Of a stretch of 64,000 nucleotides of DNA, positions 15,504 through 63,465 are shown in pieces. The first letter of the stretch is position 1. The number at the start of each line of letters is the position of its first letter. The notes beneath the pieces were generated by a model, which was not told the DNA's origin, searched no databases, and saw only the letters and a program-made list of their open reading frames with translations. A program made the position numbers and the translations under genes. The stretch covers positions 124,001 to 188,000 of IMG/VR virus record IMGVR_UViG_3300042350_004528. One strand, given 5' to 3'.

Positions 15504-15606
15504 CGCGTTTAAATTCGATAATAGTTAGATTTAAATTAATCTTACCTCATCGCCTGTTAGCTCAATGCGCGGATTGAGACTGTCTTTTGTGCCAAAGCAC
15601 AATTTC

Positions 15607-18600
15607 TTATGAAATTCTATGTCCATAGAAATAAGTCATTACTGTACCACCACCACCAACAATATCAGCATCACAACTTGCGAAGGTTCCTACGATAAGT
15701 CCATTACCAGTCCCGCGAACCCTAACCTCAATTTCTTGATCTGTTCCACCATCATTATAAACTACCGTATCAATATTCACTGTTTCAGGACAATCTGTTG
15801 AGGTTATATCGTAAATTGCAACTTTTAAATATGTTGCTGTTGTTACGTTGTAAAATGCAACGCTTGTATATGCCGTCCAATTGGCAAAACCAATTTGAGC
15901 TTGAATTTCCCAGGTTTCACCTGGTTGTATAACAAATCTATAACCATTAGCCGAAACATAACCTGTTACATCGTATTGTGTGGTATCAAATTGAACTGTT
16001 GTATCAGTATTTGCGGTTAGGTTTAAATCACTCTGTGCTAATGTAATTTGGAAATAATTACCGCCACCAGCTGATACACCTGATGTACCTGAAGATCCAG
16101 CTGCGCCCGTACCACCCGAAACACCTGATGTACCAGAAGAACCAGAAGTCCCTCTCGCCCCTGATGTACCAGAAGTTCCTGATGTACCAGAAGTTCCTGA
16201 AGAACCAGAAGTCCCTCTCGCCCCTGATGTACCAGAAGTTCCTGAAGAACCAGAAGTCCCTCTCGCCCCTGATGTACCAGAAGTTCCAGAAGTTCCTGAT
16301 GTACCACCACCACCACCACCACCTATGGTCGATACGGCTCGTAATGTTAAAAAATTATTTGTGACGTTGTCTACGGCTAAAACGTGAGTTGCGGCATTAT
16401 CAATTGGCGCAGTGACCTCAGTTTTACCAGCATTACCCCCCGAAAGTATGGTTTTAAACCCACTTACCGCCCCTACGTACACCCAATCAGTTAAAGCTGT
16501 AAGATCATTCCATACGAGATATGGGGCTTTTTGGCTTATAGCTGTCGCAGTTACGTTACTTAAATCAAAACTTAATGTCACATCACTGACTAATTGGCCG
16601 CCACCCGCCAAACCAACTCCCGAAATAACCGAAACATACGTTCCAGCGGTACCGAGATTACCTGAAATTCCTGATGTGCCAGATGTTCCTGATGTGCCAG
16701 ATGTTCCAGATGTTCCTGAAGAACCAGATGTTCCTGAAGAACCTGAGCCCGTTGAAGTTCCACTTGTTCCGATAGCACTATTACCAGATGTACCAGCGCT
16801 ACCAGAAGTTCCTGATGTTCCGCTTAATGCTGATATACCATTTAGTCCACTCACACCAGAAGTTCCTGTCGTACCAGAAGTTCCTGAAGAACCTGATGTT
16901 CCAGATGTGGCACTCACACCTGAAGTACCTGACGTTCCATTTCTTCCCGATGTTCCGAAGGAACCAGAAGTTCCTGATGTAGCACCTGTACTCACACCTG
17001 AAGTACCTGACGTTCCATTTCTTCCTGAAGTTCCGAAGGAACCAGAAGTACCCGATGTAACACCCGTACTCACACCTGATGTTCCAGATGTACCATTTCT
17101 TCCCGATGTTCCGAAAGCACCTGAAGTACCCGATGTAACACCCGTACTCACACCTGAAGTACCTGATGTACCATCTCTTCCTGAAGTTCCCGATGTTCCT
17201 GAAGAACCATTTGTTCCTGATGTTGCAGAAACACCACTTGTGCCAGCAGTTCCGTTTATTCCTGAAGTTCCAGAAGTTCCTGAAGAACCTGATGTTCCAG
17301 ATGTGGCACTCACACCTGATGTTCCAGATGTACCATCTCTTCCTGAAGTTCCGAACGCACCAGAAGTTCCCGATGTAACACCTGTACTCACACCTGAAGT
17401 ACCTGACGTTCCATTTCTTCCTGAAGTTCCGAAAGCACCTGAAGTTCCTGATGTAACACCCGTACTCACACCTGAAGTACCTGACGTTCCATTTCTTCCT
17501 GAAGTTCCGAAAGCACCTGAAGTACCTGATGTAACACCCGTACTCACACCTGAAGTACCTGATGTACCATCTCTTCCTGAAGTTCCGAAGGAACCAGAAG
17601 TTCCCGATGTCGCGGATATTCCCGATGTACCAGCAGTTCCGTTTATTCCTGAAGTTCCAGCTGTTCCTGAAGAACCTGATGTTCCCGATGTGGCACTCAC
17701 ACCTGAAGTACCTGACGTTCCATTTCTTCCTGAGGTTCCTGAAGAACCTGAAGTTCCTGATGTAGCAGAAACACCACTTGTTCCTGATGTTCCTGAAGAA
17801 CCAGAAGTACCGCTTGTCGCAGATACTCCCGATGTTCCAGCTGTACCATTTATTCCTGAGGTTCCCGAAGAACCTGATGTTCCTGAAGTTGCACTTATTC
17901 CTGAAGTTCCAGCTGTTCCTGAAGAACCAGAAGTACCTGATGTAGCGGATACTCCCGAAGTTCCAGCAGTTCCATTTCTACCCGAGGTTCCCGAAGATCC
18001 GCTTGTACCTGATGTTGCTGATACACCTGAAGTACCAGAAGTTCCCGATGATCCATTAGTTCCACTTGTTGCAGAAACACCCGAAGTTCCAGCAGTTCCA
18101 TTTATTCCTGATGTTCCTGACGATCCACTTGTACCTGAAGTACCTGATGTTCCGCTCGAACCAGAAGTACCTGATGTAGCGGATACTCCCGATGTTCCAG
18201 CAGTTCCATTTCTACCCGCAGTTCCACTTGAACCAGAAGTACCTGATGTTGCAGATACCCCACTTGTACCTGAAGTCCCGCTTGAACCAGCAGTTCCGCT
18301 TGTTGCTGATATACCTGAAGTTCCAGCAGTTCCATTTATACCTGAAGTTCCTGACGATCCGCTTGTACCAGAAGTACCAGCAGTTCCACTTGAACCAGAA
18401 GTTCCTGATGTTGCTGATATACCTGAAGTCCCAGCAGTTCCATTTCTACCCGAGGTTCCTGAAGAACCTGATGTTCCTGATGTTGCAGATACACCAGAAG
18501 TACCTGATGTTCCACTCGAACCAGAAGTTCCTGATGTAGCGGATACTCCCGATGTTCCAGCGGTTCCATTTATACCTGAAGTTCCTGACGATCCACTTGT

Positions 18601-21600
18601 ACCAGAAGTACCAGCAGTTCCACTTGAACCAGAAGTTCCTGATGTTGCTGATATACCTGAAGTACCAGCAGTTCCATTTCTACCCGAGGTTCCTGAAGAA
18701 CCTGATGTTCCACTTGTTGCTGATATACCTGATGTTCCACTTGAACCACTTGTTCCTGATGTTGCAGAAACACCACTTGTACCAGCAGTTCCATTTCTTC
18801 CTGAAGTACCTGAAGATCCACTTGTACCTGATGTTGCGGAAACGCCTGAGGTTCCCGAGGTTCCCGAAGAACCTGATGTACCACTTGTTGCAGAAACACC
18901 TGAAGTTCCGTTTATTCCTGATGTTCCCGATGAACCACTCGTTCCAGCAGTTCCAGAAGTTCCCGAAGATCCACTTGTACCTGATGTTGCAGATACACCT
19001 GAAGTTCCAGCAGTTCCATTTCTACCTGAAGTTCCACTTGAACCTGATGTACCTGATGTGGCAGATACTCCACTTGTTCCTGAAGAACCTGATGTTCCAC
19101 TTGTTGCTGATACACCTGAAGTTCCAGCAGTTCCATTTATTCCTGAGGTTCCTGAAGATCCACTTGTACCTGATGTCGCAGATACCCCACTTGTTCCTGA
19201 TGTACCTGAAGAACCAGAAGTCCCCGATGTCGCAGATACACCTGAAGTTCCAGCAGTTCCATTTCTTCCCGATGTACCTGAAGAACCAGAAGTTCCTGAT
19301 GTTGCAGATACCCCACTTGTTCCTGATGTTCCACTTGAACCTGATGTTCCACTTGTTGCTGATATCCCAGAGGTACCATTTATTCCCGATGTTCCACTTG
19401 AACCTGATGTTCCACTTGTTGCTGATATCCCAGAGGTACCAGCAGTTCCTGAAGAACCACTTGTACCGCTTGTCGCAGACACACCACTTGTTCCAGCAGT
19501 TCCGTTTCTACCTGAAGTTCCTGAAGAACCAGAAGTTCCTGATGTTGCAGATATCCCTGATGTTCCCGAGGTTCCTGAAGAACCTGATGTTCCACTTGTT
19601 GCTGATATCCCAGAGGTACCAGCAGTTCCGTTTATTCCAGAGGTTCCTGAAGAACCTGATGTTCCTGATGTTGCTGACACACCACTTGTTCCCGCAGTTC
19701 CCGAAGATCCACTTGTACCTGATGTTGCAGAAACACCTGAGGTTCCAGCAGTTCCATTTCTACCCGCAGTTCCCGAAGAACCCGATGTTCCTGATGTTGC
19801 AGATATCCCTGATGTTCCCGAGGTTCCTGAAGAACCAGAAGTTCCTGATGTTGCAGAAACACCTGAAGTACCAGCAGTTCCATTTATACCTGAAGTTCCT
19901 GACGATCCACTTGTACCAGAAGTACCAGCAGTTCCTGAAGAACCTGATGTACCACTTGTTGCAGAAACACCTGAGGTTCCAGCAGTTCCATTTCTACCCG
20001 AGGTTCCTGAAGAACCTGATGTACCTGATGTTGCAGACACTCCTGATGTACCAGCAGTTCCCGAAGAACCTGATGTTCCTGATGTCGCAGATACACCTGA
20101 AGTTCCAGCAGTTCCATTTATTCCTGAAGTTCCTGAAGAACCATTTGTTCCTGATGTCGCAGAAACACCACTTGTCCCTGATGTACCTGAAGAACCAGAA
20201 GTTCCTGATGTTGCTGATATTCCTGATGTACCAGCGGTTCCATTTCTACCTGAAGTACCTGAAGAACCACTTGTTCCTGATGTTGCTGAAACTCCCGAAG
20301 TACCAGAAGTTCCAGAGGAACCTGATGTTCCTGAAGTTGCACTTATTCCTGAAGTACCAGCCGTACCGTTTATTCCCGAAGTACCTGACGATCCACTTGT
20401 ACCAGAAGTACCTGATGTTCCGCTCGAACCAGAAGTTCCTGATGTTGCGGATACACCTGAAGTTCCAGCAGTTCCGTTTATTCCAGAGGTTCCTGAAGAA
20501 CCTGATGTTCCTGATGTTGCAGATATTCCACTTGTACCAGCTGTACCTGAAGAACCTGAAGTTCCGCTTGTTGCTGATATCCCTGAAGTCCCAGCAGTTC
20601 CATTTCTACCTGAGGTACCACTTGAACCACTCGTTCCCGATGTAGCGGATACACCACTTGTCCCTGATGTACCTGAAGAACCAGCAGTTCCACTTGTTGC
20701 AGAAACACCTGAAGTTCCAGCAGTTCCATTTATTCCTGAAGTTCCTGAAGAACCTGAAGTTCCTGAAGTTGCACTTATTCCTGAAGTTCCAGCTGTTCCT
20801 GAAGAACCTGATGTTCCTGATGTGGCACTTATTCCTGAAGTTCCAGCAGTTCCATTTCTACCCGAGGTTCCTGAAGATCCAGAAGTACCTGATGTTGCAG
20901 AAACACCTGATGTACCTGAAGTACCTGAAGAACCACTTGTTCCCGATGTTGCAGAAACACCTGATGTACCAGCGGTTCCATTTATTCCTGATGTTCCCGA
21001 TGAACCAGAAGTTCCGCTTGTTGCGGATGTACCTGATGTTCCAGCAGTACCACTTGAACCAGAAGTACCTGATGTTGCAGAAACACCTGATGTACCTGAG
21101 GTTCCATTTCTACCAGCTGTTCCTGAAGAACCCGATGTCCCACTTGTAGCGGATACACCACTTGTTCCAGCTGTACCTGAAGAACCTGATGTACCTGATG
21201 TCGCAGATATACCTGATGTTCCAGCAGTTCCATTTCTACCAGCTGTTCCTGAAGAACCCGATGTCCCACTTGTAGCGGATACTCCACTTGTTCCTGATGT
21301 TCCTGAAGAACCAGAAGTTCCTGATGTTGCTGATGCACCTGAAGTTCCAGCGGTACCATTTATTCCTGAAGTTCCCGATGATCCATTTGTACCAGCCGTA
21401 CCAGAAGTGCCAGAAGATCCACTTGTTCCGCTTGTTGCGGATATACCTGATGTTCCAGCAGTTCCATTTATACCTGAAGTTCCAGAAGAACCAGAAGTTC
21501 CGCTTGTTGCAGATATTCCTGATGTTCCAGCGGTACCATTAATACCTGATGTACCAGCTGTTCCTGAAGAACCAGAAGTTCCGCTTGTTGCAGATATTCC

Positions 21601-24600
21601 TGAAGTCCCAGCAGTTCCGTTTCTACCAGAAGTACCTGAAGAACCAGAAGTACCTGATGTTGCAGAAACACCTGATGTTCCCGAGGTTCCTGAAGAACCA
21701 GAAGTACCTGATGTGGCGGATACACCTGAAGTCCCAGCAGTTCCATTTATTCCTGATGTTCCACTTGAACCTGATGTACCTGATGTCGCAGAAACACCAC
21801 TTGTTCCTGATGTTCCACTTGAACCAGAAGTACCCGATGTCGCAGACACACCTGATGTTGCTGATACCCCCGATGTACCTGATGTTCCGCTCGATCCACT
21901 TGTTCCTGATGTTGCAGAAACACCACTTGTTCCAGCTGTACCTGAAGAACCTGAAGAACCTGATGTTCCTGATGTTGCAGATATTCCACTTGTACCAGCA
22001 GTTCCATTTCTACCTGAGGTACCACTTGAACCACTCGTTCCCGATGTTGCGGATACTCCACTTGTTCCTGATGTTCCCGAAGAACCAGAAGTTCCTGATG
22101 TTGCTGAAACACCTGATGTACCAGAAGTTCCATTTATTCCTGAAGTTCCCGATGAACCACTTGTACCAGCAGTACCTGAGGTTCCTGAAGAACCAGAAGT
22201 ACCTGATGTTGCGGATATTCCTGAAGTTCCAGCAGTTCCATTTATTCCAGCTGTTCCTGAAGAACCATTTGTTCCTGATGTCGCAGATACACCTGAAGTC
22301 CCCGCAGTTCCACTTGAACCAGAAGTTCCCGATGTTGCTGATATCCCTGAAGTTCCAGCAGTTCCGTTTCTTCCTGAGGTTCCTGAAGAGCCCGATGTTC
22401 CTGATGTAGCAGAAACACCACTTGTTCCCGCAGTTCCCGAAGAACCCGATGTTCCTGAGGTTGCTGAAACACCCGATGTTCCAGCTGTACCATTTATTCC
22501 AGATGTTCCTGAAGAACCTGATGTTCCTGAAGTTGCTGATACACCCGATGTTCCACTTGTTCCCGAAGAACCTGATGTTCCTGAGGTTGCTGAAACACCC
22601 GATGTTCCAGCTGTACCATTTATTCCTGAGGTTCCTGAAGAACCTGATGTCCCACTTGTAGCGGACACACCACTTGTTCCCGCAGTTCCTGAAGAACCAG
22701 AAGTACCTGATGTTGCTGAAACACCCGATGTTCCAGCTGTACCATTTATTCCTGAAGTTCCAGAGGAACCTGATGTTCCTGAAGTTGCTGATATTCCTGA
22801 AGTACCAGCTGTTCCTGAAGAACCAGAAGTTCCGCTTGTTGCGGATATTCCTGAAGTTCCAGCAGTTCCGTTTCTTCCTGAGGTTCCTGAAGAACCAGAA
22901 GTACCTGATGTTGCCGATACTCCCGATGTTCCTGAGGTTCCTGAAGAACCTGATGTTCCTGATGTAGCAGAAACACCTGATGTACCAGCTGTACCATTTA
23001 TCCCCGAAGTTCCCGCAGTTCCCGAAGAACCTGATGTTCCTGATGTTGCAGAAACACCACTTGTTCCAGCTGTACCTGAAGAACCTGATGTTCCACTTGT
23101 TGCCGATATTCCTGATGTACCAGAAGTTCCATTTCTTCCTGAAGTACCTGAAGAACCACTTGTTCCTGATGTTGCTGAAACACCACTTGTTCCAGCTGTA
23201 CCTGAAGAACCAGATGTACCTGATGTTGCGGAAACACCTGATGTTCCAGCGGTTCCGTTTATTCCTGATGTTCCACTTGAACCAGAAGTACCTGATGTTG
23301 CAGATACCCCACTTGTACCTGAAGTCCCGCTTGAACCAGCAGTTCCGCTTGTTGCTGATATACCTGAAGTTCCAGCAGTTCCATTTCTACCTGATGTTCC
23401 ACTTGAACCCGATGTACCTGATGTTGCAGATACTCCTGAAGTTCCAGCAGTACCACTTGAACCTGATGTACCTGATGTGGCAGACACACCACTTGTACCA
23501 GCAGTTCCATTTCTTCCTGATGTTCCACTTGAACCTGATGTTCCTGATGTTGCAGACACTCCTGATGTACCTGAGGTTCCTGAAGATCCACTTGTACCTG
23601 ATGTTGCTGATATCCCCGAAGTTCCAGCAGTTCCATTTATTCCTGATGTACCTGAGGTTCCACTTGAACCCGATGTTGCAGACACACCTGATGTGCCTGA
23701 GGTTCCCGAAGAACCTGATGTACCTGATGTCGCAGATATACCTGATGTTCCAGCAGTTCCATTTATTCCTGAAGTACCTGAAGATCCGTTTGTACCTGAT
23801 GTTGCGGAAACACCTGAGGTTCCCGAGGTTCCCGAAGAACCCGATGTTCCTGATGTGGCAGACACACCACTTGTACCAGCAGTTCCATTTCTTCCCGATG
23901 TACCTGAAGTTCCGCTTGAACCAGCAGTACCGCTTGTCGCAGATACTCCACTTGTACCAGCAGTTCCGTTTATTCCTGATGTTCCAGCAGTACCACTTGA
24001 ACCTGATGTACCTGATGTTGCAGACACTCCTGATGTTCCAGCAGTACCATTTATTCCTGAAGTACCCGAAGATCCGTTTGTACCAGCAGTCCCTGAAGTC
24101 CCCGAAGATCCACTTGTACCTGATGTCGCTGATGCCCCTGAAGTTCCAGCGGTTCCGTTTATTCCTGATGTTCCACTTGAACCAGATGTTCCACTTGTTG
24201 CCGATATCCCTGATGTACCAGCGGTTCCATTTCTACCTGAAGTACCACTTGAACCTGATGTACCTGATGTTGCAGAAACACCTGATGTACCTGAAGTTCC
24301 ATTTATCCCTGATGTGCCTGAAGTACCGCTTGAACCTGATGTTCCTGATGTTGCAGACACTCCTGAAGTTCCTGATGTTCCCGAAGAACCAGAAGTTCCT
24401 GATGTTGCAGACACTCCTGAAGTTCCTGATGTTCCATTTATTCCTGATGTTCCACTTGAACCTGATGTACCTGATGTGGCAGATACTCCTGAAGTTCCCG
24501 AAGTACCTGAAGAACCAGATGTACCTGATGTTGCGGAAACACCTGATGTTCCAGCGGTTCCGTTTATTCCTGATGTTCCACTTGAACCAGATGTTCCTGA

Positions 24601-27600
24601 TGTGGCGGATACACCCGAAGTTCCCGAAGTACCTGAAGAACCAGAAGTTCCTGATGTCGCAGATACCCCACTTGTACCAGCGGTTCCATTTATTCCTGAT
24701 GTTCCACTTGAACCTGATGTTCCTGATGTGGCAGATACTCCACTTGTACCAGAGGTACCACTTGAACCCGATGTACCTGATGTTGCAGATACTCCACTTG
24801 TACCAGCAGTTCCGTTTATTCCTGAAGTACCTGAAGATCCACTTGTACCTGATGTTGCTGATATACCTGAAGTTCCAGCAGTTCCATTTCTACCAGCTGT
24901 ACCTGAAGATCCTGATGTTCCACTTGTCGCAGATACCCCACTTGTACCAGCGGTTCCATTTATTCCTGATGTTCCAGAAGAACCTGATGTTCCTGATGTG
25001 GCAGATACACCCGAAGTTCCTGAAGTTCCACTTGAACCCGATGTTCCTGATGTGGCAGACACACCACTTGTACCAGCAGTTCCGTTTATTCCTGATGTTC
25101 CAGCAGTACCACTTGAACCTGATGTACCTGATGTTGCAGACACACCACTTGTTCCAGCAGTTCCATTTCTACCAGCGGTTCCACTTGAACCATTTGTTCC
25201 AGATGTTGCAGATACCCCTGAAGTTCCTGATGTTCCGTTTATTCCCGAAGTTCCTGAAGAACCTGATGTTCCTGATGTTGCGGAAACACCTGAAGTTCCC
25301 GATGTTCCATTTCTACCTGATGTTCCCGAAGAACCTGAGGTTCCTGAAGAACCATTTGTTCCCGATGTTCCACTTATTGCTGATATACCATTTAATCCAT
25401 CAATACCCGATGTACCAGTTGAACCACTTGTTCCTGATGTTGCAGATACACCTGATGTTCCAGCACTCCCACTTCTACCTGATGTTCCCGAAGAACCTGA
25501 GGTTCCTGAAGAACCATTTGTTCCCGATGTTCCACTTATTGCTGATATACCATTTAATCCATCAATACCCGATGTACCAGTTGAACCAGAAGTTCCACTT
25601 GTCGCAGACACTCCTGATGTTCCAGCAGTACCATTTCTTCCTGAGGTTCCCGAAGAACCTGAGGTTCCACTTGTTGCAGATACTCCACTTGAACCTGATG
25701 TACCTGATGTCGCAGATACTCCCGATGTACCAGAGGTACCCGATGTTCCTGAAGAACCAGAAGTTCCAGATGTTGCAGAAACACCTGATGTTCCCGATGT
25801 TCCTGAAGAACCTGATGTTCCTGATGTGGCAGACACACCACTTGTACCAGCAGTTCCATTTATTCCTGATGTTCCCGAAGAACCAGATGTACCTGATGTT
25901 GCCGATATACCTGAAGTTCCAGCGGTACCATTTATTCCAGATGTTCCATTGGAACCACTTGTTCCCGATGTCGCAGACACACCTGAAGTCCCAGCGGTTC
26001 CATTTCTCCCCGATGTTCCACTTGAACCTGATGTTCCACTTGTAGCGGATACTCCCGATGTACCAGCAGTACCGTTTATTCCTGAAGTACCTGAAGAACC
26101 ATTTGTTCCAGATGTGGCAGATACTCCACTTGAACCAGCAGTACCGCTTGTCGCAGATACTCCACTTGTTCCCGAGGTTCCTGAAGACCCAGACGTTCCT
26201 GATGTTGCAGATACACCTGATGTTCCAGCACTCCCACTTCTACCTGATGTTCCCGAAGAACCTGATGTTCCTGATGTCGCAGACACACCTGAAGTTCCAG
26301 AGGTTCCGTTTATTCCCGATGTACCTGAAGAACCAGATGTCCCTGATGTTCCACTTATCGCTGATGTACCAGCAGTACCGTTTATTCCTGAAGTACCTGA
26401 AGAACCATTTGTTCCAGATGTGGCAGACACACCTGAAGTTCCTGATGTTCCATTTATTCCTGATGTACCTGATGAACCACTTGTACCAGCAGTTCCACTT
26501 ATCGCTGATGTACCAGCAGTACCATTTATTCCCGAAGTTCCTGATGACCCAGAAGTTCCTGATGTTGCCGATATTCCCGAAGTTCCTGATGTTCCATTTA
26601 TTCCTGATGTACCTGATGAACCACTTGTTCCTGATGTCGCAGACACACCACTTGTACCAGCAGTTCCATTTGAACCTGATGTTCCTGATGTTGCTGATAT
26701 CCCAGAAGTACCTGATATCCCAGAAGTACCTGATGAACCACTTGTACCAGCAGTTCCATTTCTTCCTGAGGTTCCGCTTGAGCCAGAAGTTCCTGAAGTT
26801 CCACTCTCACCTGAAGTTCCCGAAGAACCTGAAGTTCCTGAAGAACCACTTGTACCGCTTGAACCAGAAGTTCCCGAAGAACCTGAAGTATTCGATTCAC
26901 CTGATGTACCAGCACCACCTGATGTTCCAGCAGTACCACCTGTTCCCGAGGTTCCAGCCTGGGATGTACTTGTTCCAGATGTACCAGCACCACCTGATGT
27001 TCCAGAAGTACCACCTGTTCCCGAGGTTCCAGCCTGGGATGTACTTGTTCCAGATGTACCAGCACCACCTGATGTTCCAGCAGTACCACCTGTTCCCGAG
27101 GTTCCACTTATTGCTGATATACCATTTAATCCATCAATACCCGATGTACCAGTTGAACCAGAAGTTCCTGATGTTGCTGATATCCCCGAAGTTCCAGCAG
27201 TTCCATTTCTACCTGATGTTCCACTTGAACCAGAAGTTCCTGATGTTGCTGATATCCCTGATGTACCAGAGGTACCCGATGTTCCTGAAGAACCATTTGT
27301 TCCGCTTGTCGCCGATACCCCTGATGTTCCCGAAGAACCCGAAGTTCCAGCAGTTCCTGAAGAACCATTTGTTCCCGATGTCGCAGATATCCCACTTGTT
27401 CCCGATGTTCCATTTATTCCTGATGTACCTGAAGATCCACTTGAACCTGATGTACCTGATGTGGCAGATACACCTGATGTTCCAGCGGTTCCATTTATTC
27501 CTGAAGTCCCCGAAGATCCACTTGTTCCAGCAGTACCTGATGTACCCGAAGAACCCGATGTTCCCGAAGATCCGCTAGATCCTGAAGTCCCCGAACTTCC

Positions 27601-30600
27601 GCTTGAGCCAGAAGTACCTGATGTTCCTGAACTCCCCGAACTTCCGCTTGAGCCAGAAGTACCTGATGTTCCTGATGTTGCGGAAACACCTGATGTACCA
27701 GCGGTTCCATTTCTTCCTGAAGTTCCGCTTGAACCAGAAGTTCCAGATGTTGCAGAAACACCTGAAGTTCCATTTAATCCTGATGTTCCCGAAGAACCTG
27801 ATGTTCCCGAAGAACCTGATGTTCCCGAAGAACCTGATGTACCAGTAGTTCCTGATGTACCTGAAGAACCTGAGGTTCCAGAAGAACCTGATGTTCCCGA
27901 AGAACCTGACGTACCTGATGTCGCAGATATTCCAGAAGTACCTGAAGTTCCAGATGATCCACTTTCACCCGATGTTCCCGAGGTTCCAGACGTTGCGGAA
28001 CCACCACTCTCACCCGCTAGTCCATTAACACCCGAAGTACCTGAAGAACCTGATGTTCCTGATGTTGCGGAAATGCCTGAAGTACCACTTGTACCGTTTG
28101 AGCCTGATGTTCCAGAAGTACCTGAAGACCCAGACGTTCCCGAAGAACCACTTGTCCCATTTGTACCCGATTCACCTGAAGTACCTGAAGACCCAGACGT
28201 TCCTGAAGTTCCATTTGTTCCTGATTTACCTGAAGACCCAGACGTTCCTGAAGTTCCACTTTCGCCAGAAGTTCCTGAAGTTCCATTTGTTCCTGATTCA
28301 CCTGATGTTCCCGAAGAACCACTTGTACCACTTGTTCCAGAAGAACCATTTGTACCATTTGTTCCAGATGTTCCACTTTCACCAGAAGTTCCCGAAGTTC
28401 CACTTTCACCCGAAGTTCCTGAAGAACCTGATGTACCTGATGTTGCAGATATCCCTGATGTTCCCGAAGAACCATTTGTACCACTTTCACCTGAACTTCC
28501 ACTTTCACCCGAACTTCCACTTGTGCCAGAAGTTCCCGAACTTCCACTTGAACCTGATGTACCTGAACTTCCACTTTCACCCGAAGTACCGTTTGTACCA
28601 CCCTCACCCGAAGTTCCATTTGTTCCTGAAGTTCCCGAAGTTCCACTTATTGCTGATATACCATTTAATCCATCAATACCCGATGTACCAGTTGAACCAG
28701 AAGTTCCTGATGTTGCTGATATACCTGAAGTTCCAGCAGTTCCATTTATTCCCGATGTTCCACTTGAACCAGAAGTTCCCGAAGAACCATTTGTACCAGA
28801 AGTTCCCGAAGAACCATTTGTACCACTTTCACCTGAAGTACCGTTTGTACCCGACTCACCAGATGTCCCTGATGTTCCCGATGTACCTGAAGAACCAGAT
28901 GTTCCTGATGTTCCTGAAGAACCATTTGTACCGCTCTCACCTGAACTTCCGCTTGAACCAGAAGAACCTGATGTTCCACTTGAGCCAGAAGAACCTGATG
29001 TTCCACTTGAGCCAAATGTTCCTGAGGTTCCAGAAGAACCATTTGTACCACTCTCACCTGAACTTCCACTCTCACCCGAAGTTCCTGAGGTTCCAGAAGA
29101 ACCTGATGTTCCACTTGAACCAGAAGTACCCGATGTTCCCGAAGAACCATTTGTACCACTTTCACCTGAAGTACCACTTTCACCCGAACTTCCACTTGAA
29201 CCAGAAGTACCTGATGTTCCTGAAGAACCAGAAGTACCTGATGTTCCTGAAGTACCGTTTGTACCACTTTCACCTGAAGTACCACTTTCACCCGATGTTC
29301 CTGAGGTTCCTGATGTACCTGAGGAACCACTTGTTCCAGAAGTTCCCGATGTTCCCGAAGAACCATTTGTACCACTTTCACCTGAAGTACCACTTTCACC
29401 TGAAGAACCCGAAGTTCCTGATGTACCTGAGGAACCACTTGTACCTGAAGTTCCAGATGATCCACTTTCACCCGATGTGCCTGAAGTTCCAGAAGTTGCG
29501 GAACCACCACTCTCACCCGCTAGTCCATTAACACCCGAAGTTCCTGAAGAACCAGAAGTTCCCGAAGAACCCGATGTCCCTGAAGTTGCTGAAAAACCTG
29601 AAGTACCGTTTGTACCCGACTCACCCGAAGTTCCCGAAGTTCCCGAAGAACCTGATGTTCCCGATGTTCCCGAAGAACCCGATGTCCCTGAAGTTGCTGA
29701 AAAACCTGAAGTACCATTTGTGCCCGACTCACCCGAAGTTCCTGAAGTTCCTGAAGAACCCGATGTCCCAGAAGTTCCTGAAGAACCCGATGTTCCTGAA
29801 GTTCCACTTTCACCTGAAGTACCGTTTGTACCCGACTCACCCGATGTTCCCGATGTTCCCGATGTACCTGAGGAACCACTTGTTCCCGAAGAACCCGAAG
29901 AACCTGATGTTCCTGAAGTTCCATTTGAACCTGATGTTCCTGAAGTTCCACTTTCACCCGAAGTTCCACTTGAGCCAGAAGTACCTGAGGAACCACTTGT
30001 TCCCGAAGAACCTGAAGAACCTGATGTACCTGATGTTCCTGAAGAACCATTTGTACCACTCTCACCTGAAGTACCACTCTCACCCGAAGAACCTGATGTT
30101 CCTGATGTTCCAGATGATCCACTTGTACCTGATGTTCCTGATGTTCCCGAAGAACCATTTGTCCCTGACTCACCTGAAGTACCGTTTGTTCCCGACTCAC
30201 CAGATGTCCCCGATGTCCCCGATGTACCTGATGAACCAGAAGTTCCCGAAGAACCAGATGTCCCTGATGTTCCGTTTGTTCCAGATTCACCATTTGTACC
30301 ATTTTCACCAGACGTTCCTGAAGTTCCTGAAGTTCCGCTTGTTCCTGATGTTCCTGAAGAACCAGAAGTACCTGATGTTCCGTTTGTTCCAGATTCACCA
30401 TTTGTACCATTTTCACCAGACGTTCCTGAAGTTCCTGAAGTTCCGCTTGTTCCTGATGTTCCTGAAGAACCAGACGTTCCTGAAGTTCCTGAAGTTCCGC
30501 TTGTTCCAGATTCACCATTTGTACCATTTTCACCCGAAGTTCCTGAAGAACCAGAAGTTCCCGAAGAACCAGAAGTTCCCGAAGTTCCACTTGTACCCGA

Positions 30601-31557
30601 TGTACCAGACGTACCGTTTGTCCCACTTTCACCCGATGTTCCTGATGTTCCTGTTGTCCCCGATGTTCCTGATGTGCCAGATGTGCTTGGCAACACCATA
30701 TATTTGTCAATTCTTTTTGCTACGATTATAACAGAGGGCGCCGCTGGATAATTAACCCCAGCCCCTAAAGCTGTTATTTGTACATGTTGATTTGTGGATA
30801 AAAATACAAACTCAACACAATCATTAGCTTGTAAATTAAATTGATATGCAACAAATGGTAATTGATATGCGCCATTTCCGCTTAATGTTATAGTTGATGT
30901 TGTCCTGGGCTCGTCATTGCCATTAATTCTTGCCCAAATTATAATATCAGTACCGTTTGCATTTGATGCGGCTTCAATTTGAGCTGAATATCCTATTTCA
31001 TAAACACCAGCATTATCTACGGTAATTTGTGAATTATTTTGTACACTAATGCCATTTGCAATTTCGGTTGTATTATATTCCCAAACGGTTGGTATACTTG
31101 AACCACTGACTACTTGTGTGGTTGAATCACTAAACGACCCATAATAATTATCTCCAGTCCACGAAGTACCAGATGAACCTGCTGTTCCCGAAGTACCAGT
31201 AGTTCCTGATGTACCTGAAGAACCAGAAGTTCCCGACTCACCAGATGTCCCCGATGTACCTGAGTAACCAGATGTTCCTGAGGTACTAGCGGCGGAATAT
31301 GTGAATTGACCCGTTAGCGGATCAAATGTTACGACATATTGCGGATTTAATTCTTGAGTTAATTCCTGATTAACCCAATTACTACCATTATAAACTAAAA
31401 TACTACCAGCTGTTGCGCCAGTTGTTATTATTACATCAGTTAGGTCATCCAGACCTAAGTTCTCAATTGCATTTTTTAGATTATCAAAATTCGCGTCAAG
31501 TTCGCCGAATGTTAAAGGTCTACCTAGTGCGCATCTTAAATATATTGTAACCGCCAT
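15607..31557 (-). CDS. Giant (5316 aa) Gly-X-Y Ser/Thr-rich collagen-like fibre protein with C1q/BclA-like globular domains
   Basis: N-terminus [21 protein letters not shown] resembles phage fibre attachment segments. Beta-sandwich at about aa 135-285 (YYGSF...[11 protein letters not shown]). About 4700 aa of period-3 [19 protein letters not shown]-terminal beta domain (TTVQFDT..YD...RFVIQ). TATTTAT upstream. Confidence 0.85.
16660..30690 (-). repeat. About 14-kb period-9-nt coding repeat (Gly-X-Y triplets) with synonymous variation
   Basis: Plus strand is built of units such as GTTCCTGAT, GTTCCTGAA, GAACCAGAA, GTACCTGAT. Confidence 0.95.
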
Positions 31558-31558
31558 T

Positions 31559-31604
31559 TATTATCGAAATTTAAACTACTTATAAATAGTCCAAATTCCG
31601 ATAA
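31559..31604 (-). promoter_or_regulatory. Hairpin covering the fibre gene translation start, with TATTTAT motif in its loop
   Basis: Minus strand TTATCGGAATTT-ggactatttataagtagttt-AAATTTCGATAA-taa-ATG. Confidence 0.65.
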
Positions 31605-46138: not shown

Positions 46139-46203
46139 ATCCTTTTTATTATAAATATCTCTACAATCGCATTTGTTCAGATATTTATAACTAAATTTGT
46201 AAA

Positions 46204-46602
46204 ATGAAATTTATACCAAAAGAAAGGTACGCAATTAATTATCCAGGTAGAAATACCTTAATACTTGTTGACGTTGATAAATTTTTAAATCGTTTAAAAA
46301 AAGATGACCCAGATTTTTATGTTGGGCCAGATACAAAATTATTATTTAGTCAGGGTAGAATTAAAAACTCAATGGATTACATTGAAAAGTTTTCAGAAGA
46401 TCCCAGATCAATTCATCCAAAAACGGGTGAGAGGTGGTCGTACACTATGATGTTTGAACCAACCGAAACAAGTATATCTAACGGTAAATTAGGTATAAAA
46501 AATGGTAGACACAGAATGGTTGCTTTAAAGAATTTAGGTTACACCCATGCTTATGTTGAGGTACCCAAAGATCAAACTGATTTATTTAAAGATTTAGCTT
46601 AA
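46204..46602 (+). CDS. ParB/Srx-like domain protein
   Basis: NGRHRMVALKNLG motif. TATTTAT at 46182-46188. Confidence 0.6.
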   Translation: MKFIPKERYAINYPGRNTLILVDVDKFLNRLKKDDPDFYVGPDTKLLFSQGRIKNSMDYIEKFSEDPRSIHPKTGERWSYTMMFEPTETSISNGKLGIKNGRHRMVALKNLGYTHAYVEVPKDQTDLFKDLA

Positions 46603-47183
46603 CAACCAAGCGTTTGTTTTGCTTCATTGCGCAAGTTTTCGTTGTAAATCCCATCCTCGTCATCAACATTTTCACATGTAACAATTAGGAAAAATGCAGC
46701 GCCAGTAGTCCACTCATCCATATTACCAATACCTAAGTTTTTACCCTTTTTAGTATGATAATTTAAATAACTCTCCAAAGCATCACCAATTTGGTCATCA
46801 TCTACATATTCCTTCCAATCACTAGCGGTTGTTAAATATTTACCATCCTCATCCTCATCCTCTTCTTGAGCCCTTTCTAAAAAGTCCCATAATTCATCTT
46901 TTATGTCGCTGTTTTGATCATCCCAAACTTCATCCATTGTATATAACAATTCGTTAGTTTTTTTGTTTTTTAAAAGGTATTCACCACTAGTAACACTAAC
47001 TAATTCATAATCACCACTAGCTGTTATTGCATCACTCATATGCGGATCACTTTGATTCCATGGGGCGTCTGGCGTATCTGAGCCAGCTGGGTAATTATAA
47101 TTATCCATCTCTTGAACTCTCTTCATTTCTAATTTCTCGAACAATTTTTGTAATTGGTCTTCGGTTATTCTGTATTTAGCCAT
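46599..47183 (-). CDS. Acidic hypothetical protein, N-terminal YRITEDQL motif
   Basis: TATTTAT at 47199-47205 (minus). Confidence 0.7.
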   Translation of the reverse strand: MAKYRITEDQLQKLFEKLEMKRVQEMDNYNYPAGSDTPDAPWNQSDPHMSDAITASGDYELVSVTSGEYLLKNKKTNELLYTMDEVWDDQNSDIKDELWDFLERAQEEDEDEDGKYLTTASDWKEYVDDDQIGDALESYLNYHTKKGKNLGIGNMDEWTTGAAFFLIVTCENVDDEDGIYNENLRNEAKQTLGC

Positions 47184-47220
47184 GATCTATATTTTAATAT
47201 AAATATCTTAAATAATAATA

Positions 47221-48142
47221 AAAGCCTCGTGTGGCGGCTTATTGTAATTGATTACCGCAAGTTGGGCAGAATTTCCAGTTTGATTTTTTTATTCTAACAC
47301 CACAACCTGTGCAATAATTTCTTAACTCACCAACCTCAATTGGCTTTTGTGAGTTCGGTAAAATTTTCCAAGTCACTGAATGTGTTGCATATGAACTAAA
47401 ATCCATGTTAACATCTTTGAATTTAGTGTTTGATTTTTCGCCTTTTTCAACACGACCAGTTTCAATACTTTTTGTTAAACTTCTTTTATTTGAGTTTAAT
47501 TTTAATGAAGCTGAAACACCAACCACATCTGAGGTATACGTAATACCAGCTGAATAGTTAGCTGTGTTATCAAAACACGTTATTGTGTTTGGATTTGGGT
47601 TTGTGTTATTGTAATAAATAACTGGAGGTTGATTCCACGGATAACCACCAAATCCAGAACTTGTTGATGCTATTCCAGATAAAACCGTTTCATCGTAAAA
47701 TTCGATTTCAACCAATCCGTTATTTTGAATGGCCTGTTTTATCACATCCTCATCACCATCTGCGATATAAGTGGAAAATAAGAATTTTCTAGCATCATCG
47801 AAATAACGATCCAAATGAATTCTTTGACCAGGTTTAATAACCAAGCCCCTGTTTGAGATGTAATTACCGTTTAATTTTATTTTCGCTAAAACCGAAATTG
47901 TTTTCGGATTAAATACCTCGATCTCAAATTGATCTTGGTTGTCAAGATAAACAACACCATCGTGCTGTTTGATTCTGTTTTTGCCTTTTGTGATGTAGGC
48001 TTCTGGGTTCGGGTTTAAACCGAACGAATAGTTTGTTGTGTACATTTTTTTTCTCGTTTTATTTTTATTATACTAACCTTTTTGTCGCTCATCACGACTC
48101 AAGGGCAACAAGTACCCAAGGTTAATAGCCACACGAGGCTTT
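47221..48142. repeat. Perfect 15-bp inverted repeat pair bracketing the zinc-ribbon gene
   Basis: AAAGCCTCGTGTGGC at 47221-47235 and GCCACACGAGGCTTT at 48128-48142. Confidence 0.9.
47239..48045 (-). CDS. Beta-rich protein with C-terminal zinc ribbon
   Basis: CTGCG...FCPTCG at the C-terminus. Flanked by 15-bp inverted repeats. Confidence 0.8.
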   Translation of the reverse strand: MYTTNYSFGLNPNPEAYITKGKNRIKQHDGVVYLDNQDQFEIEVFNPKTISVLAKIKLNGNYISNRGLVIKPGQRIHLDRYFDDARKFLFSTYIADGDEDVIKQAIQNNGLVEIEFYDETVLSGIASTSSGFGGYPWNQPPVIYYNNTNPNPNTITCFDNTANYSAGITYTSDVVGVSASLKLNSNKRSLTKSIETGRVEKGEKSNTKFKDVNMDFSSYATHSVTWKILPNSQKPIEVGELRNYCTGCGVRIKKSNWKFCPTCGNQLQ

Positions 48143-48176
48143 CATATAAATATATGAAGCTTTAAAATGTAATCAA

Positions 48177-48779
48177 TTAATATTCAAAAATAATTTTATT
48201 TGGTTGTAATCTACCGCTGATGGCTTGAGTATAAAAAGCATCGCCACTTTCATAAGTTCTATTAGATTCAAATACAACCTCAGTATCCATTGATGGAATT
48301 TCAATATTTTTTCCACCCAAATCCATAGTCCCACTTAAAGTGTTTGTTTTTAAACCACTTCTATCGAACTCTAATTCAAAGTCTTTCTCAAAAGAATCAT
48401 CATCACCAGTTAATTCCAATGAGCCATAAATCAAAACACTAATAGGTGATAAATAAACATCTTTAATACCATATGACCTGTATTCTATTTCAATTGAATA
48501 GTTGGCAACGGCCCCACGAAATGTTATATATGTGTCATACTCAACACCATCCACAATCACAGTTGCCCCCCTTGTCCCTGGTTTTGCTATGTTTTTAAAT
48601 AAAGCTTCCATATCGATATCTAGATCAATATCGGAACCACTTTTCAATTCGTTTCTAAAAACATTATTAGATGCGTCAGCCTCATTCATATTAGCTGATT
48701 CGTTAGATTGTTTGTCTTTTTGTTTTTTACTGAGTATGGCAGCAAATTGAGTTTCAGATATTCTATATGTTTTTTTCAT
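48177..48779 (-). CDS. Hypothetical protein, N-terminal YRISETQF motif
   Basis: TATTTAT at 48792-48798 (minus). Confidence 0.7.
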   Translation of the reverse strand: MKKTYRISETQFAAILSKKQKDKQSNESANMNEADASNNVFRNELKSGSDIDLDIDMEALFKNIAKPGTRGATVIVDGVEYDTYITFRGAVANYSIEIEYRSYGIKDVYLSPISVLIYGSLELTGDDDSFEKDFELEFDRSGLKTNTLSGTMDLGGKNIEIPSMDTEVVFESNRTYESGDAFYTQAISGRLQPNKIIFEY

Positions 48780-48805
48780 ACTTTTTTACATATAAATATC
48801 AACAA

Positions 48806-49378
48806 CTACGATATAAGTTCAATAAAGTCACCCAAATTCGAAGATATTGGTGTTAATCTTTCAAACCCGTAAAAACCAGATTTACCCCTCGCTTTATAAT
48901 AATCCGAAACCAATAAGTCAGATCTGGAATACATATCAATTATATTTGGTGTACCCACACCACATATATAAAAATCGGTCTTACTTAACATACAGATAAA
49001 AATCGATTTCCGATATGTCTTTTTATAGACCATAGGGAATAATCCATAATTGAATGTGACAACATCTATATTTTTTTTGGGTGCAGCTTGATTTAAAAAC
49101 GAAATTCGATTATCATCAAAAATTTTGTCGTAATCAACTATATTGTATAAACCAAGATGTTGTTCTAAAACCAAATCACCTGCGGTTTGCATGTAAGTTT
49201 TACGATAAATCGTAATTTCTTGCTCAAATAATTTTCTACCTTTGGATTTTTCTCGCTCCTTTATGCGGTTTCCAATAACAGTCGCTAACTTTGTGCGTCT
49301 ATCGGTATCAAGGGTCACCTTAGCAAACTTATTGACATAAGGTGTAAAATAATTATCGTATGTAAAAATTGAACTCAT
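48806..49378 (-). CDS. Hypothetical protein
   Basis: 190-aa ORF behind a host-type promoter. Confidence 0.7.
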   Translation of the reverse strand: MSSIFTYDNYFTPYVNKFAKVTLDTDRRTKLATVIGNRIKEREKSKGRKLFEQEITIYRKTYMQTAGDLVLEQHLGLYNIVDYDKIFDDNRISFLNQAAPKKNIDVVTFNYGLFPMVYKKTYRKSIFICMLSKTDFYICGVGTPNIIDMYSRSDLLVSDYYKARGKSGFYGFERLTPISSNLGDFIELIS

Positions 49379-57415: not shown

Positions 57416-57724
57416 ATGGTAAAACTTTTTGAGAGAATACATATCCCATTGTGGATCGCAAAGGATATGTTCTGGATGTTGGGTCAGGGCGAACTCTCAT
57501 TGGCTTTCGCGATACCAACCATAATATTATCAACAATACTCATAACAGTAAAACAGGGGTCGGAAAGGTGGCTCGAGATGATGATGGCCTTTTGGTTATC
57601 AGCCAATACCTTATGGATGTCCCACGAGCTTTTTCATACGGACACAAAAGAAATTGCATTAACCTGTTTTTTATTTGGCATTTTAACAATTCCAATCTAT
57701 TTATTAAAGATAAAAGAAGAATAA
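57416..57724 (+). CDS. Small multi-pass membrane protein
   Basis: HIPLWIAKDMFWM..., about four hydrophobic segments. Start at 57410 or 57416. Confidence 0.65.
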   Translation: MVKLFERIHIPLWIAKDMFWMLGQGELSLAFAIPTIILSTILITVKQGSERWLEMMMAFWLSANTLWMSHELFHTDTKEIALTCFLFGILTIPIYLLKIKEE

Positions 57725-57732
57725 AACTAGTT

Positions 57733-59307
57733 ATGAAACTAACTGAGGAAATAAAGAAAATGCAATCCATGATGGGCATTATGTCCGAGGATGTGAAAAT
57801 ATACGCAAACGGTGTTGGATCTGAGGTGTTTAATGATAACGAACATTACGGAAAGGTTGATGATATTAATTTAAATGACACCATAGCAAATGAACCGTTT
57901 AAGGATATGGAATACATGGATAAAAGTTCCAATGTCGATGATATGGTTCAAGCCTTGAAATCTGGTGAAGAGCTGCCACCAATACTTGTTATTCAACACC
58001 CCTTCGACCAATCAAAATATTTGGTTGTCGATGGAAACCATAGAAGATACGCATATGACCGCGCAGGTGCTGATAAGATTCCAGCCGTTGTGATTAAACC
58101 AGAGGATGTTTTGTTAATGCAATCCGATTGGGGTGATCCAGAGGAAAAGGCGATCAGATTATCTGATGTTATATCCGATCCAGAGTTGTTTGCTCGAGAA
58201 AACACAAGAATGTTAATTGACAAGTATTTTGTTAAACCAGACGGATCACATGAGTTCGAATTGAATGAAAATTTATATGAGGAAAAGAAAAAAGCCGATC
58301 GTTGTTTAAGAATAGCGAGAAGAAAATACAGCAAACCATCAGCATATAGATCTGGTGCAATCGTTCAATGCAGAAGAGGAAAGATATGGAGAGGTTTGAA
58401 GGAAGAGGAGATCCAAATGATTGACAACGCACCAGAGGAAATGCAAGGTTTGATCGCCAAGGCTCACGATGCTTTGACGTGGAAGAGGGGTCGAAAAGAA
58501 TATGCTCCAGATTTTAATGAACTTCAAACATGGGTGGATGCTTATTTGGAGACTGACGGTGGAATGCATGAAGCGAAGAAAACCGATTTCTCAAAGGAGA
58601 AAAAGAGCGGACTTCACGGATGGTTTTCAAGAAGAGGTGGTGGCGGAAGCAAAGGATGGGTTGATTGCAACACATGCAGAAAAGTTGACGGAAAGAAAAA
58701 ATGCAAGGCTTGTGGAAGACAAAAGGGTGAGGTGAGAGCCAAGTACCCATCATGCAGACCAACACCAGCATCATGCGGAACACCAGGAAAGGGAAAATCT
58801 TGGGGCAAGACAAAGGAAGAGGGTTACAGCTTGAATGAAGCCAAGGAGATGAAGAGAGTTGCTTTGCTTTTCATTGTGATTGACAACGAAGCGTTGTTGT
58901 TCAAGAGAAGCGAAGACGAAACAACAAATCCAGGAAAATACGGAATGCTTGGTGGTGGAATTGAAAAGAATGAAACGCCAGAGGAAGCAATCGTGAGAGA
59001 GATCAGAGAAGAAGCTGGTGTTGAGTTGAAATCATTCAAACCACTGAAGAAATATATTTACAACAACGAGTGTGAATTAAACGTATTCTACACAAACGAA
59101 TTTCCAATTGATGATGTTGTGCTTGACAAGAACGAACACACATCGTACAAATATTTCACGATGGAACAATTGATAGATATGGATCCAAAGGATATGATTG
59201 GTTCCAACAAAGAAATCGCGAAGGATTACAACGAGATCGCAAACAAGAAAAAGAAATTGGAAGAAGAGATAGAGAGAATAAAAGCTACGATGAAGATTCT
59301 TATTTAA
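57733..59307 (+). CDS. Tagged polyprotein-like fusion: ParB/Srx domain, two Cys-rich basic modules, NUDIX hydrolase
   Basis: LPPILV...VDGNHRR (ParB). PSAYRSGAIVQC and GWVDCNTC...CGR...YPSCRP modules. Nudix box GGGIEKNETPEEAIVREIREEAG. Tags at both termini. Start at 57733. Confidence 0.8.
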   Translation: MKLTEEIKKMQSMMGIMSEDVKIYANGVGSEVFNDNEHYGKVDDINLNDTIANEPFKDMEYMDKSSNVDDMVQALKSGEELPPILVIQHPFDQSKYLVVDGNHRRYAYDRAGADKIPAVVIKPEDVLLMQSDWGDPEEKAIRLSDVISDPELFARENTRMLIDKYFVKPDGSHEFELNENLYEEKKKADRCLRIARRKYSKPSAYRSGAIVQCRRGKIWRGLKEEEIQMIDNAPEEMQGLIAKAHDALTWKRGRKEYAPDFNELQTWVDAYLETDGGMHEAKKTDFSKEKKSGLHGWFSRRGGGGSKGWVDCNTCRKVDGKKKCKACGRQKGEVRAKYPSCRPTPASCGTPGKGKSWGKTKEEGYSLNEAKEMKRVALLFIVIDNEALLFKRSEDETTNPGKYGMLGGGIEKNETPEEAIVREIREEAGVELKSFKPLKKYIYNNECELNVFYTNEFPIDDVVLDKNEHTSYKYFTMEQLIDMDPKDMIGSNKEIAKDYNEIANKKKKLEEEIERIKATMKILI

Positions 59308-62484: not shown

Positions 62485-62691
62485 TTGTCTTTAACAACAA
62501 TACAAAGGTAAATGAAATAAATTTAACTTGCAAACTTTAACACAAATTTCTTTGTTTTTTTTTTGACTCATTTTAAGCCGTTTTAAGACACTCTAACAAC
62601 TAAACCATACGAACATATACCTTTGTTCCTTTCGTTTAATCTGAGCATAAAAAAAGGGGCGATTTGCCCCTTTCTTTGTTTCTTGTTTACC

Positions 62692-62925
62692 TTACCAAAC
62701 CAAAACCGCTGGGTCTTCCGTTTGGGCGATTTGTTCCGCCTTTGTTTTTAACTCGGTCATTTGAGCGATTAAAACCTCATAGGTCGGTCTTTGATTTGTT
62801 TTGTAACCCAAAATTCGTTTGGCACAATCCCTCGCTGAAATTCGGCTCATTTTCATTCCTGTTTTTTTCTCGAACTCTAAGCCGCGAAGGCATACTACGA
62901 TTTGAAAAAGTGATGTTGTTGTCAT
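62692..62925 (-). CDS. Early-type small protein (MTTTSLFQ...)
   Basis: ATG 21 nt downstream of the -7 box. Confidence 0.7.
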   Translation of the reverse strand: MTTTSLFQIVVCLRGLEFEKKTGMKMSRISARDCAKRILGYKTNQRPTYEVLIAQMTELKTKAEQIAQTEDPAVLVW

Positions 62926-63032
62926 TGTTTGTTTGTTTTGATAGTTCAAAGATAAACGAAATAAATTTAACTTGCAAATTTTAACATAAAAAAAAGGGGA
63001 ATTTCTTCCCCTTTCTTTGTTTCTTGTTTACC

Positions 63033-63173
63033 TTAAAAATTTCTTCCCGAAATTTTATATTTGTCTTCTTTTGGATTACCCCAAAACCAATTGTTAAGTT
63101 TACGAACTATAACTATTGATAGCCAAATGGTAAGAAAAAATATGGGCAATCCGATAATAAAGAAATCTTTCAT
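63033..63173 (-). CDS. Small membrane protein (46 aa)
   Basis: MKDFFIIGLPIFFLTIWLSIVIV, with its own promoter and terminator. Confidence 0.65.
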   Translation of the reverse strand: MKDFFIIGLPIFFLTIWLSIVIVRKLNNWFWGNPKEDKYKISGRNF

Positions 63174-63282
63174 AGGTTTGTTTGTTTTGTTGATATAAAG
63201 ATAAGTTAAATTTATTTCATTTGCAAGTTTTAACATAAAAAAAGGGGAATTTCTTCCCCTTTGTTTGCATTAGCACTTTTGT

Positions 63283-63348
63283 TTACATTAGCACAGCCAT
63301 GATTAACAAAGCACCGCAAAAAAGCGTTAAGACGAATAGAATACTCAT
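63283..63348 (-). CDS. 21-aa hydrophobic peptide MSILFVLTLFCGALLIMAVLM, not in ORF track
   Basis: Only ORF between the promoter at 63371 and the terminator at 63241. Confidence 0.55.
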   Translation of the reverse strand: MSILFVLTLFCGALLIMAVLM

Positions 63349-63465
63349 TGTTTATTTTGATTTGTTGATACAAAGATAAGTTAAATTTATTTCATTTGCA
63401 AGTTTTAACATAAAAAAAAGGGAACTTTTTTTGTTCCCTCTCTTTTGATCCACAACCCTATTCTT

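Follow-up and report, generated by a model that had tools for sequence, protein, structure and literature searches.

We identified a gene of a 299-kb freshwater jumbo phage that is flanked by sequences allowing the start and the end of its predicted mRNA to pair, next to a new three-stem RNA leader. About a hundred divergent phage relatives retain these features while changing the actual sequence, which makes this the best-conserved 5'-3' paired bacterial-type mRNA that we could find. The locus lies on the minus strand of a 64,000-nt stretch of DNA (the window; positions 124,001 to 188,000 of IMG/VR record IMGVR_UViG_3300042350_004528), which is part of a single 298,833-bp contig with 34% G+C rated complete by CheckV. 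The genome carries a T4-type Gp23 capsid gene, a ClpB-like ATPase, ThyA, a helicase and a 5,316-codon ORF, and the flanked protein has homologues in Lak megaphages and other 'huge phages', indicating a jumbo phage. Repeated TTTG...TAnnTTTG-type promoters elsewhere in the window suggest a Bacteroidota host, although this assignment is an inference.

Reading the minus strand confirmed each element that a sequence-only reading had described, so that the underlying observation holds. In order, the strand contains the promoter-like motif ATATTTAT (48153-48146), which includes the TATTTAT noted at 48152-48146; the 15-mer AAAGCCTCGTGTGGC (48142-48128); a 57-nt segment folding as a three-way junction (48127-48071); an A-rich linker and translation-initiation region before the ATG (48070-48046); the ORF of a 268-aa zinc-ribbon protein (48045-47239, TAA stop at 47241-47239); and, starting 3 nt after the stop codon, the exact reverse complement GCCACACGAGGCTTT (47235-47221). 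In the RNA, the 5' arm AAAGCCUCGUGUGGC (48128-48142, extendable to 48145 by A-U and G.U pairs) and the 3' arm GCCACACGAGGCUUU (47221-47235) can form a helix that we call P0. A U-rich tract, UUUUAUUAUUAUUU (47210-47223), directly follows or overlaps the end of the 3' arm, and the ATATTTAT motif of the next gene (motif 47199-47206, 15 nt before the ATG of gene 46599-47183) marks the downstream limit of the unit. The leader from the first arm base to the ATG is 97 nt rather than the 95 nt given in the sequence-only reading. The ATATTTAT motif lies in intergenic DNA 12-25 nt before more than 30 start codons of this genome, and its promoter function is inferred.

The inverted repeat is far beyond chance expectation. 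The 15-mer and its complement each occur once in the genome, and they constitute the only perfect inverted repeat of at least 15 nt with at least 9 G/C (here 60% G+C) and arms less than 5 kb apart. The expectation is 0.0068 per genome (0.0014 within 1 kb), and none of 40 Markov-simulated genomes contained one. Initial intergenic duplex scans were dominated by tRNA spacers and large-loop artefacts, and we therefore scanned the 130 nt upstream of every gene against the 70 nt after its stop for contiguous helices; of about 360 genes, this one has the best contiguous 5'/3' helix. The same scan does not support the suggestion that end-pairing is a recurring strategy of the phage. Most ATATTTAT-driven genes have leaders of only 12-25 nt, and the scan yielded only one other clear case, a 135-codon gene outside the window (genome 285791-286198) with a 19-bp helix of the same layout, for which a search returned no relatives. 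The fibre gene, which the sequence-only reading had taken as a parallel, has an AT-rich 18-bp helix with a bulge, the contiguous part of which is within the shuffle range, and its significance is uncertain.

To test whether pairing is conserved, a check that the sequence-only reading had proposed, we collected 206 loci encoding relatives (100% down to about 33% protein identity) from IMG/VR, JGI metagenomes and GenBank phages, which gave 129 distinct flank sets; a megablast search of the region against the phage collection found nothing. In 96 of the 129, the best contiguous helix between positions -150 to -50 and the first 60 nt after the stop exceeds the 99th percentile of shuffled controls. 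When anchored on the junction, found by nhmmer in 110 loci, 87 have a significant helix formed by the 36 nt immediately 5' of P1, the basal stem of the junction. The geometry is constant, as the arm ends 0-6 nt before P1 and the 3' arm starts 3-13 nt after the stop (median 8 nt, interquartile range 6-10), with a helix of 10-20 bp (median 13). The sequence, in contrast, is not: AAAGCCUCGUGUGGC, GGAACCUCGUG, GGAACCUCAC, GAGCCUCGCUCU, UGAAACCUUGUUG, GAAACACCCAUAAC, GAAACACCGAUAA, UCUCACUUUGUU, CUGGGGAGCC, GUGAUGCCUACA and UUUUGAGUCUCGUUUU are examples, each with its exact partner after the stop. The arms fall into at least 10 unrelated families, and with one representative per family every 5' arm pairs best with its own 3' flank (10 of 10 rows and 9 of 10 columns; cognate score 31.4 against 15.7 for non-cognate pairs). 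RNAduplex energies are -23.8 kcal/mol for cognate pairs against -10.7 for shuffled flanks. P0 is dispensable in some lineages, given that about a fifth of the loci with the junction lack a significant P0 and a small clade (loci L017, L030 and L125 of our collection) has neither P0 nor a local hairpin. In another clade (L050 type), the long-range arm is replaced by a local 6-bp hairpin at the same spot, ACUAGA-GGUU-UCUAGU, as expected if a duplex at the 5' terminus is what matters.

The leader was confirmed as the three-way junction described in the sequence-only reading. P1 is formed by 48118-48127 with 48071-48080, P2 by 48103-48117 and P3 by 48084-48098, with J2/3 (UUGA) at 48099-48102 and J3/1 (AAA) at 48081-48083. 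This is the minimum-energy structure (-25 kcal/mol, z = -3.8, none of 200 shuffles as good), and the linker (48046-48070) is unpaired in the minimum-energy and centroid folds and A-rich in all aligned homologues. RNAalifold on 21 sequences recovered the three helices with compensatory changes in 17 of 20 pairs. On 82 diverse sequences, 94.4% of cells form standard pairs, compared to 61.5% after shuffling and 38-46% when the partner is slid, and all 19 pairs show double changes; G.U is the commonest pair at four positions. The junction bases U..GA between P2 and P3 and an A between P3 and P1 are invariant or nearly so. A covariance model built from the alignment hits the phage genome exactly once, at this gene (E = 2e-11), consistent with a leader structure conserved at a fixed position upstream of one gene family. 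The model also finds the motif in homologues that lack P0, but not in Lak-C1 or locus L045. No Rfam 15 family matches, even at E up to 10, and by eye the junction does not fit the hammerhead core. A large IMG/VR screen for structured RNAs (PMC10690425) does not mention this gene or any long-range pairing, although its 10,006 unnamed candidates could include the leader.

The energetics of this RNA favor the long-range helix over local structures. Each arm can form a local hairpin, but these are worth only -6.0 and -5.6 kcal/mol, while association of the ends gains a net -19.4 kcal/mol. In a fold of the full 948-nt RNA, the 15 pairs have a probability of about 1.0, and nucleotide 15 (paired to 908) is followed directly by nucleotide 16 (paired to 72), such that P0 can stack on P1. 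None of the 87 loci with P0 has a local 5' hairpin above the shuffle threshold. The proposed switch based on kissing local hairpins is therefore not supported as a conserved feature. Overall, the interpretation in the sequence-only reading is partly supported: the panhandle and the junction hold, whereas the hairpin switch, termination control as the general function and a genome-wide strategy are not supported, and its alternative of a mobile or invertible cassette is disfavored.

Because two inverted ends would also be expected to co-vary as the terminal inverted repeats of a mobile element, we looked for strand asymmetry. Single non-Watson-Crick positions inside otherwise perfect helices are of the G.U type 28 times and of the A.C type 3 times when counted per locus; counting only distinct sequence contexts gives 6 against 0, which is the same direction but modest evidence once relatedness is removed. 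A cruder family-level sign test comparing sense and antisense helix length was not significant (6 against 4), and we rely on the internal mismatches and the junction instead. Stronger support comes from context. A similar AT-rich promoter-like motif ends 0-8 nt before the 5' arm in most homologues, and the arm is fused to a covarying RNA junction in which G.U is the commonest pair at four positions, while the partner lies between the stop codon and, in many relatives, a textbook terminator. In locus L105 the arm begins 2 nt after the encoded CCA of a tRNA-Ser, leaving no room for a promoter; there the 5' end must be made by tRNA processing, and the arm still sits at the end.

A DNA-level element, whether a small mobile or invertible cassette or paired binding sites for a DNA-binding protein, could account for a perfect inverted repeat around a single ORF, for co-varying ends and for a zinc-ribbon protein of no known function, but we consider it very unlikely. 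The arms and the leader are single-copy, Pfam and PHROGs searches of the six neighboring ORFs found no recombinase or transposase domain, and no direct repeats flank the arms. Neighbors and orientation are the same in 7 of 7 close relatives from independent assemblies, a comparison that extends only to about 60% identity, and the G.U bias of mismatches as well as the clade with a local hairpin lacking a 3' partner argue against it. Invertible switches of the Hin/Gin/Fim type and mobile elements with terminal inverted repeats likewise have short inverted repeats, here flanking a roughly 0.9-kb segment, but this unit has no nearby recombinase, is single-copy and has a fixed orientation, and the evidence points to RNA-level pairing.

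To look for transcript ends, circular RNA and inversion, we aligned four metatranscriptome or RNA-labelled runs to 46400-48900. Coverage was very thin, with only five contigs of 127-175 nt, three within the CDS and the rest on the leader and 3' flank, and they showed no strand-switch joints or end pile-ups; we regard this as uninformative rather than negative. Among 12 short assembled contigs, 4 start within 6 nt of the 5' arm (L210, L211, L220 and L214), and others, including L215 and L222, end just after the 3' arm, more often than expected. The 928-nt contig L214 spans exactly from 5 nt before the arm to the U-tract of the terminator. However, several such contigs are labelled as metagenomic DNA, and we do not count them as evidence for transcript ends; the breaks could hint at a DNA-level boundary, but the simplest reading is assembly breaks at the edge of a conserved unit.

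The encoded protein belongs to a family with more than 2,200 members, and 40 of 42 members match Zn_Ribbon_1. The AlphaFold model (pLDDT 75) predicts an Ig/MSP-like beta-sandwich, a disordered insert (residues 124-188) and a C-terminal CxxC...CxxC zinc ribbon. Pfam and PHROGs searches, a PDB profile search, Foldseek against PDB, BFVD and AFDB, VIA-align and the Atlas returned only the zinc ribbon and a generic Ig/MSP-like sandwich, with structural matches that are generic or uncharacterised and give no indication of function.

Our best explanation, which we consider more likely than not, is that the unit is a monocistronic phage mRNA built as a closed loop. In this view, transcription starts a few nucleotides after an ATATTTAT-type promoter, and the first ~15 nt of the RNA pair with a segment 3 nt after the stop codon, about 900 nt away, forming P0 directly abutting the junction, followed by the A-rich ribosome-loading region and the CDS. 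What the comparison shows is that P0 and the junction are RNA structures under selection, and of this we are highly confident; their function is inferred, and the proposal that the main role is stability or translation-coupled control is tentative. P0 would hide the 5' terminus, and with it the start of the 3' UTR, from 5'-end-dependent decay enzymes. Because the 3' arm begins within a ribosome footprint of the stop codon, a terminating ribosome should open P0 transiently, which would couple the state of the 5' end to translation. The junction is probably a binding platform, possibly for the gene's own zinc-ribbon protein.

This arrangement would resemble the 5'-terminal stem-loop stabilisers, such as the E. 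coli ompA leader, in which a duplex at the very 5' end blocks 5'-end-dependent decay. The L050-type clade has exactly such a local hairpin at the homologous position, but in most members of the family the second strand comes from the 3' UTR about 0.8-1 kb away, which would close the whole mRNA. [quoted passage not shown] In hbs, the helix overlaps an internal RNase Y site rather than the 5' terminus, and its 3' UTR is reported as not conserved among orthologues (PMC7821165); here, pairing is kept by compensatory change in 87 of 110 loci, down to 38% protein identity, at the presumed 5' end, abutting a three-way junction and in a phage. In S. aureus icaR, which together with RNAIII is another case of 5'-3' UTR pairing (PMC7821165), the 3' UTR masks the ribosome-binding site and creates an RNase III site, and is thus repressive, whereas here the 5' arm lies about 55-70 nt upstream of the start region and leaves the A-rich initiation region unpaired.

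Alternatively, P0 could be an RNase III-type processing stem, cleavage of which would excise or mature the mRNA from read-through transcripts or trigger its decay, as with rRNA precursor stems, T7 early mRNAs or icaR. Complementary flanks enclosing a functional RNA are the classical layout, P0 abuts P1 with no unpaired base in the full-length fold, and in this clade, lacking a separate terminator and with co-directional neighboring genes, read-through transcripts are plausible. However, such stems comprise about two turns (~20 bp or more) of double-stranded RNA, whereas P0 is 10-20 bp with a median of 13 and reaches about 25 bp only if stacked on P1; one clade substitutes a 6-bp local hairpin; and most relatives have their own promoter-like motif just before the arm and a terminator just after, so that no excision would be needed. 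The phage encodes no RNase III, although the host would. There is no evidence of cleavage, and we consider this explanation unlikely.

Less likely still is a long-range intrinsic terminator specific to this clade, in which the 5' end of the nascent RNA supplies the upstream half of the helix and P0 followed by UUUUAUUAUUAUUU ends transcription, making termination depend on a free 5' arm. In the close relatives L001-L011 the 3' arm is immediately followed by the conserved U-rich tract, a terminator scan called nothing at 47207-47241, and the local alternative is poor, with a 5-bp stem and a 9-nt loop rather than the 3-8 nt loop of a canonical G+C-rich terminator hairpin. On the other hand, in most other clades a separate hairpin-plus-U terminator follows the arm and only 5 of 95 have a U-rich tail, so that termination cannot be the conserved function. 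Forming a helix with a 900-nt loop within the time window of termination is kinetically unlikely, as inferred from the established properties of intrinsic termination, and contigs L210 and L211, which start at the arm, run on into the next gene.

A more far-reaching possibility, which we regard as unlikely but not excluded, is that the helix and junction form a phage closed-loop mRNA device, a bacterial-world counterpart of eukaryotic mRNA circularisation. The stop codon and the start region would be held together by P0 stacked on the junction, each terminating ribosome would melt P0, and the junction would recruit the gene's own zinc-ribbon protein or the ribosome, thereby coupling termination, re-initiation and decay within one RNA. 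In a more extreme version, also not excluded, the juxtaposed ends would be processed and joined by the phage's RNA ligase; the phage has an RNA-ligase-family gene but no RtcB.

Pairing between the two UTRs of a bacterial-type mRNA is known from a handful of single genes (hbs, icaR, RNAIII), and such 3' UTRs are noted as generally not conserved between species (PMC7821165), making it hard to say whether end-pairing is a general, selectable design principle. Here, the same architecture is kept across about a hundred divergent huge-phage lineages with at least ten unrelated families of arm sequences, and is tied to a new, strongly covarying three-way-junction RNA upstream of a widespread gene family. 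This provides a natural series of compensatory variants together with natural controls, one clade with a local hairpin and one with neither feature, which could reveal what closing an mRNA does to its stability, translation and 3'-end formation. It also flags the zinc-ribbon protein as something that these phages regulate with unusual care.

The 'fibre' gene of the window, a 5,316-codon ORF at 15607-31557, is flanked by complementary segments at 15507-15523 and 31559-31576 (minus strand), with GUUUAAAUU(U)CGAUAAUA located directly before its AUG and complementary to UAUUAUCGAAUUUAAAC, which lies 83 nt after its stop and just before a canonical terminator. The resulting helix would comprise 18 bp with a 1-nt bulge and is AT-rich, and its contiguous part is within the range of the shuffled sequences. 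Unlike in the zinc-ribbon gene, the 5' arm of this helix would cover the initiation region. On the strand opposite this ORF, a 4,779-codon open frame extends over window positions 16412-30751 (+), which presumably reflects highly biased or repetitive coding sequence. Outside the window, the second-best helix in the genome-wide scan for 5'/3' complementarity was found at a 135-codon gene on the phage genome contig (G000:C1:285791-286198, minus strand; locus L208), where AAUGUAUCGCGAUCUACCA and UGGUGGAUUGCGAUACAUU can form a 19-bp 5'/3' helix with the 3' arm lying 5 nt after the stop; no relatives of this gene were retrievable with which to test its conservation.

Two types of promoter-like sequence were observed. 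In intergenic DNA across the whole genome, ATATTTAT occurs 12-25 nt upstream of more than 30 start codons on both strands (in the window, e.g. at 46158, 46181, 47206, 48153 and 48799). It is likely a phage middle or late promoter element that yields very short leaders, and the 100-nt leader of the zinc-ribbon gene is an outlier in this respect. The region at window positions 62510-63397, continuing to about 192 kb of the genome, contains many copies of TTTGCAAGTTAAATTTATTTCATTTA(T/C)CTTTG next to hairpin terminators, between small ORFs. This motif fits the Bacteroidota -33 TTTG / -7 TAnnTTTG promoter type, suggesting an early-gene cluster read by the host polymerase and a Bacteroidota host.

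In one relative of the zinc-ribbon locus (locus L105, 1302-1403), the 5' arm of the end helix starts 2 nt after the encoded CCA end of a tRNA-Ser gene, and the 5' end of that mRNA must come from tRNA 3' processing; tRNA clusters also precede the gene in the relatives L016, L144 and L167. In the jumbo phage itself, long non-coding spacers at G000:C1:277503-280555, outside the window, are packed with tRNA-like sequences, forming a large tRNA array. One clade of relatives (loci L050, L051, L056, L058, L073, L077, L143, L148, L165 and L198) replaces the long-range 5' arm with a local hairpin, ACUAGA-GGUU-UCUAGU, about 35 nt before the junction, although a residual 7-9-bp complementarity (GGUUUCU / AGA(A/G)AUC) to the 3' flank remains in most members.

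Among the short public contigs that carry the locus (L210, L211, L214, L215, L216, L218, L220, L221 and L222), including DNA-labelled ones, there is a tendency to start at the 5' arm or to end just after the 3' arm, which could be due to either assembly breaks at a conserved/variable boundary or RNA ends. One of these contigs, L214 (928 nt), runs from 5 nt before the arm to the U-tract of the terminator, and two others, L210 and L211, which derive from different phages and datasets, start at the same base (AGCC...). The phage encodes an RNA-ligase-family protein (PF09414; G000:C1:248197-248895, minus strand) but no RNase III or RtcB, and it also has a 618-aa protein with a C-terminal NUDIX domain (window 57451-59307); either of these proteins could bear on RNA end chemistry.
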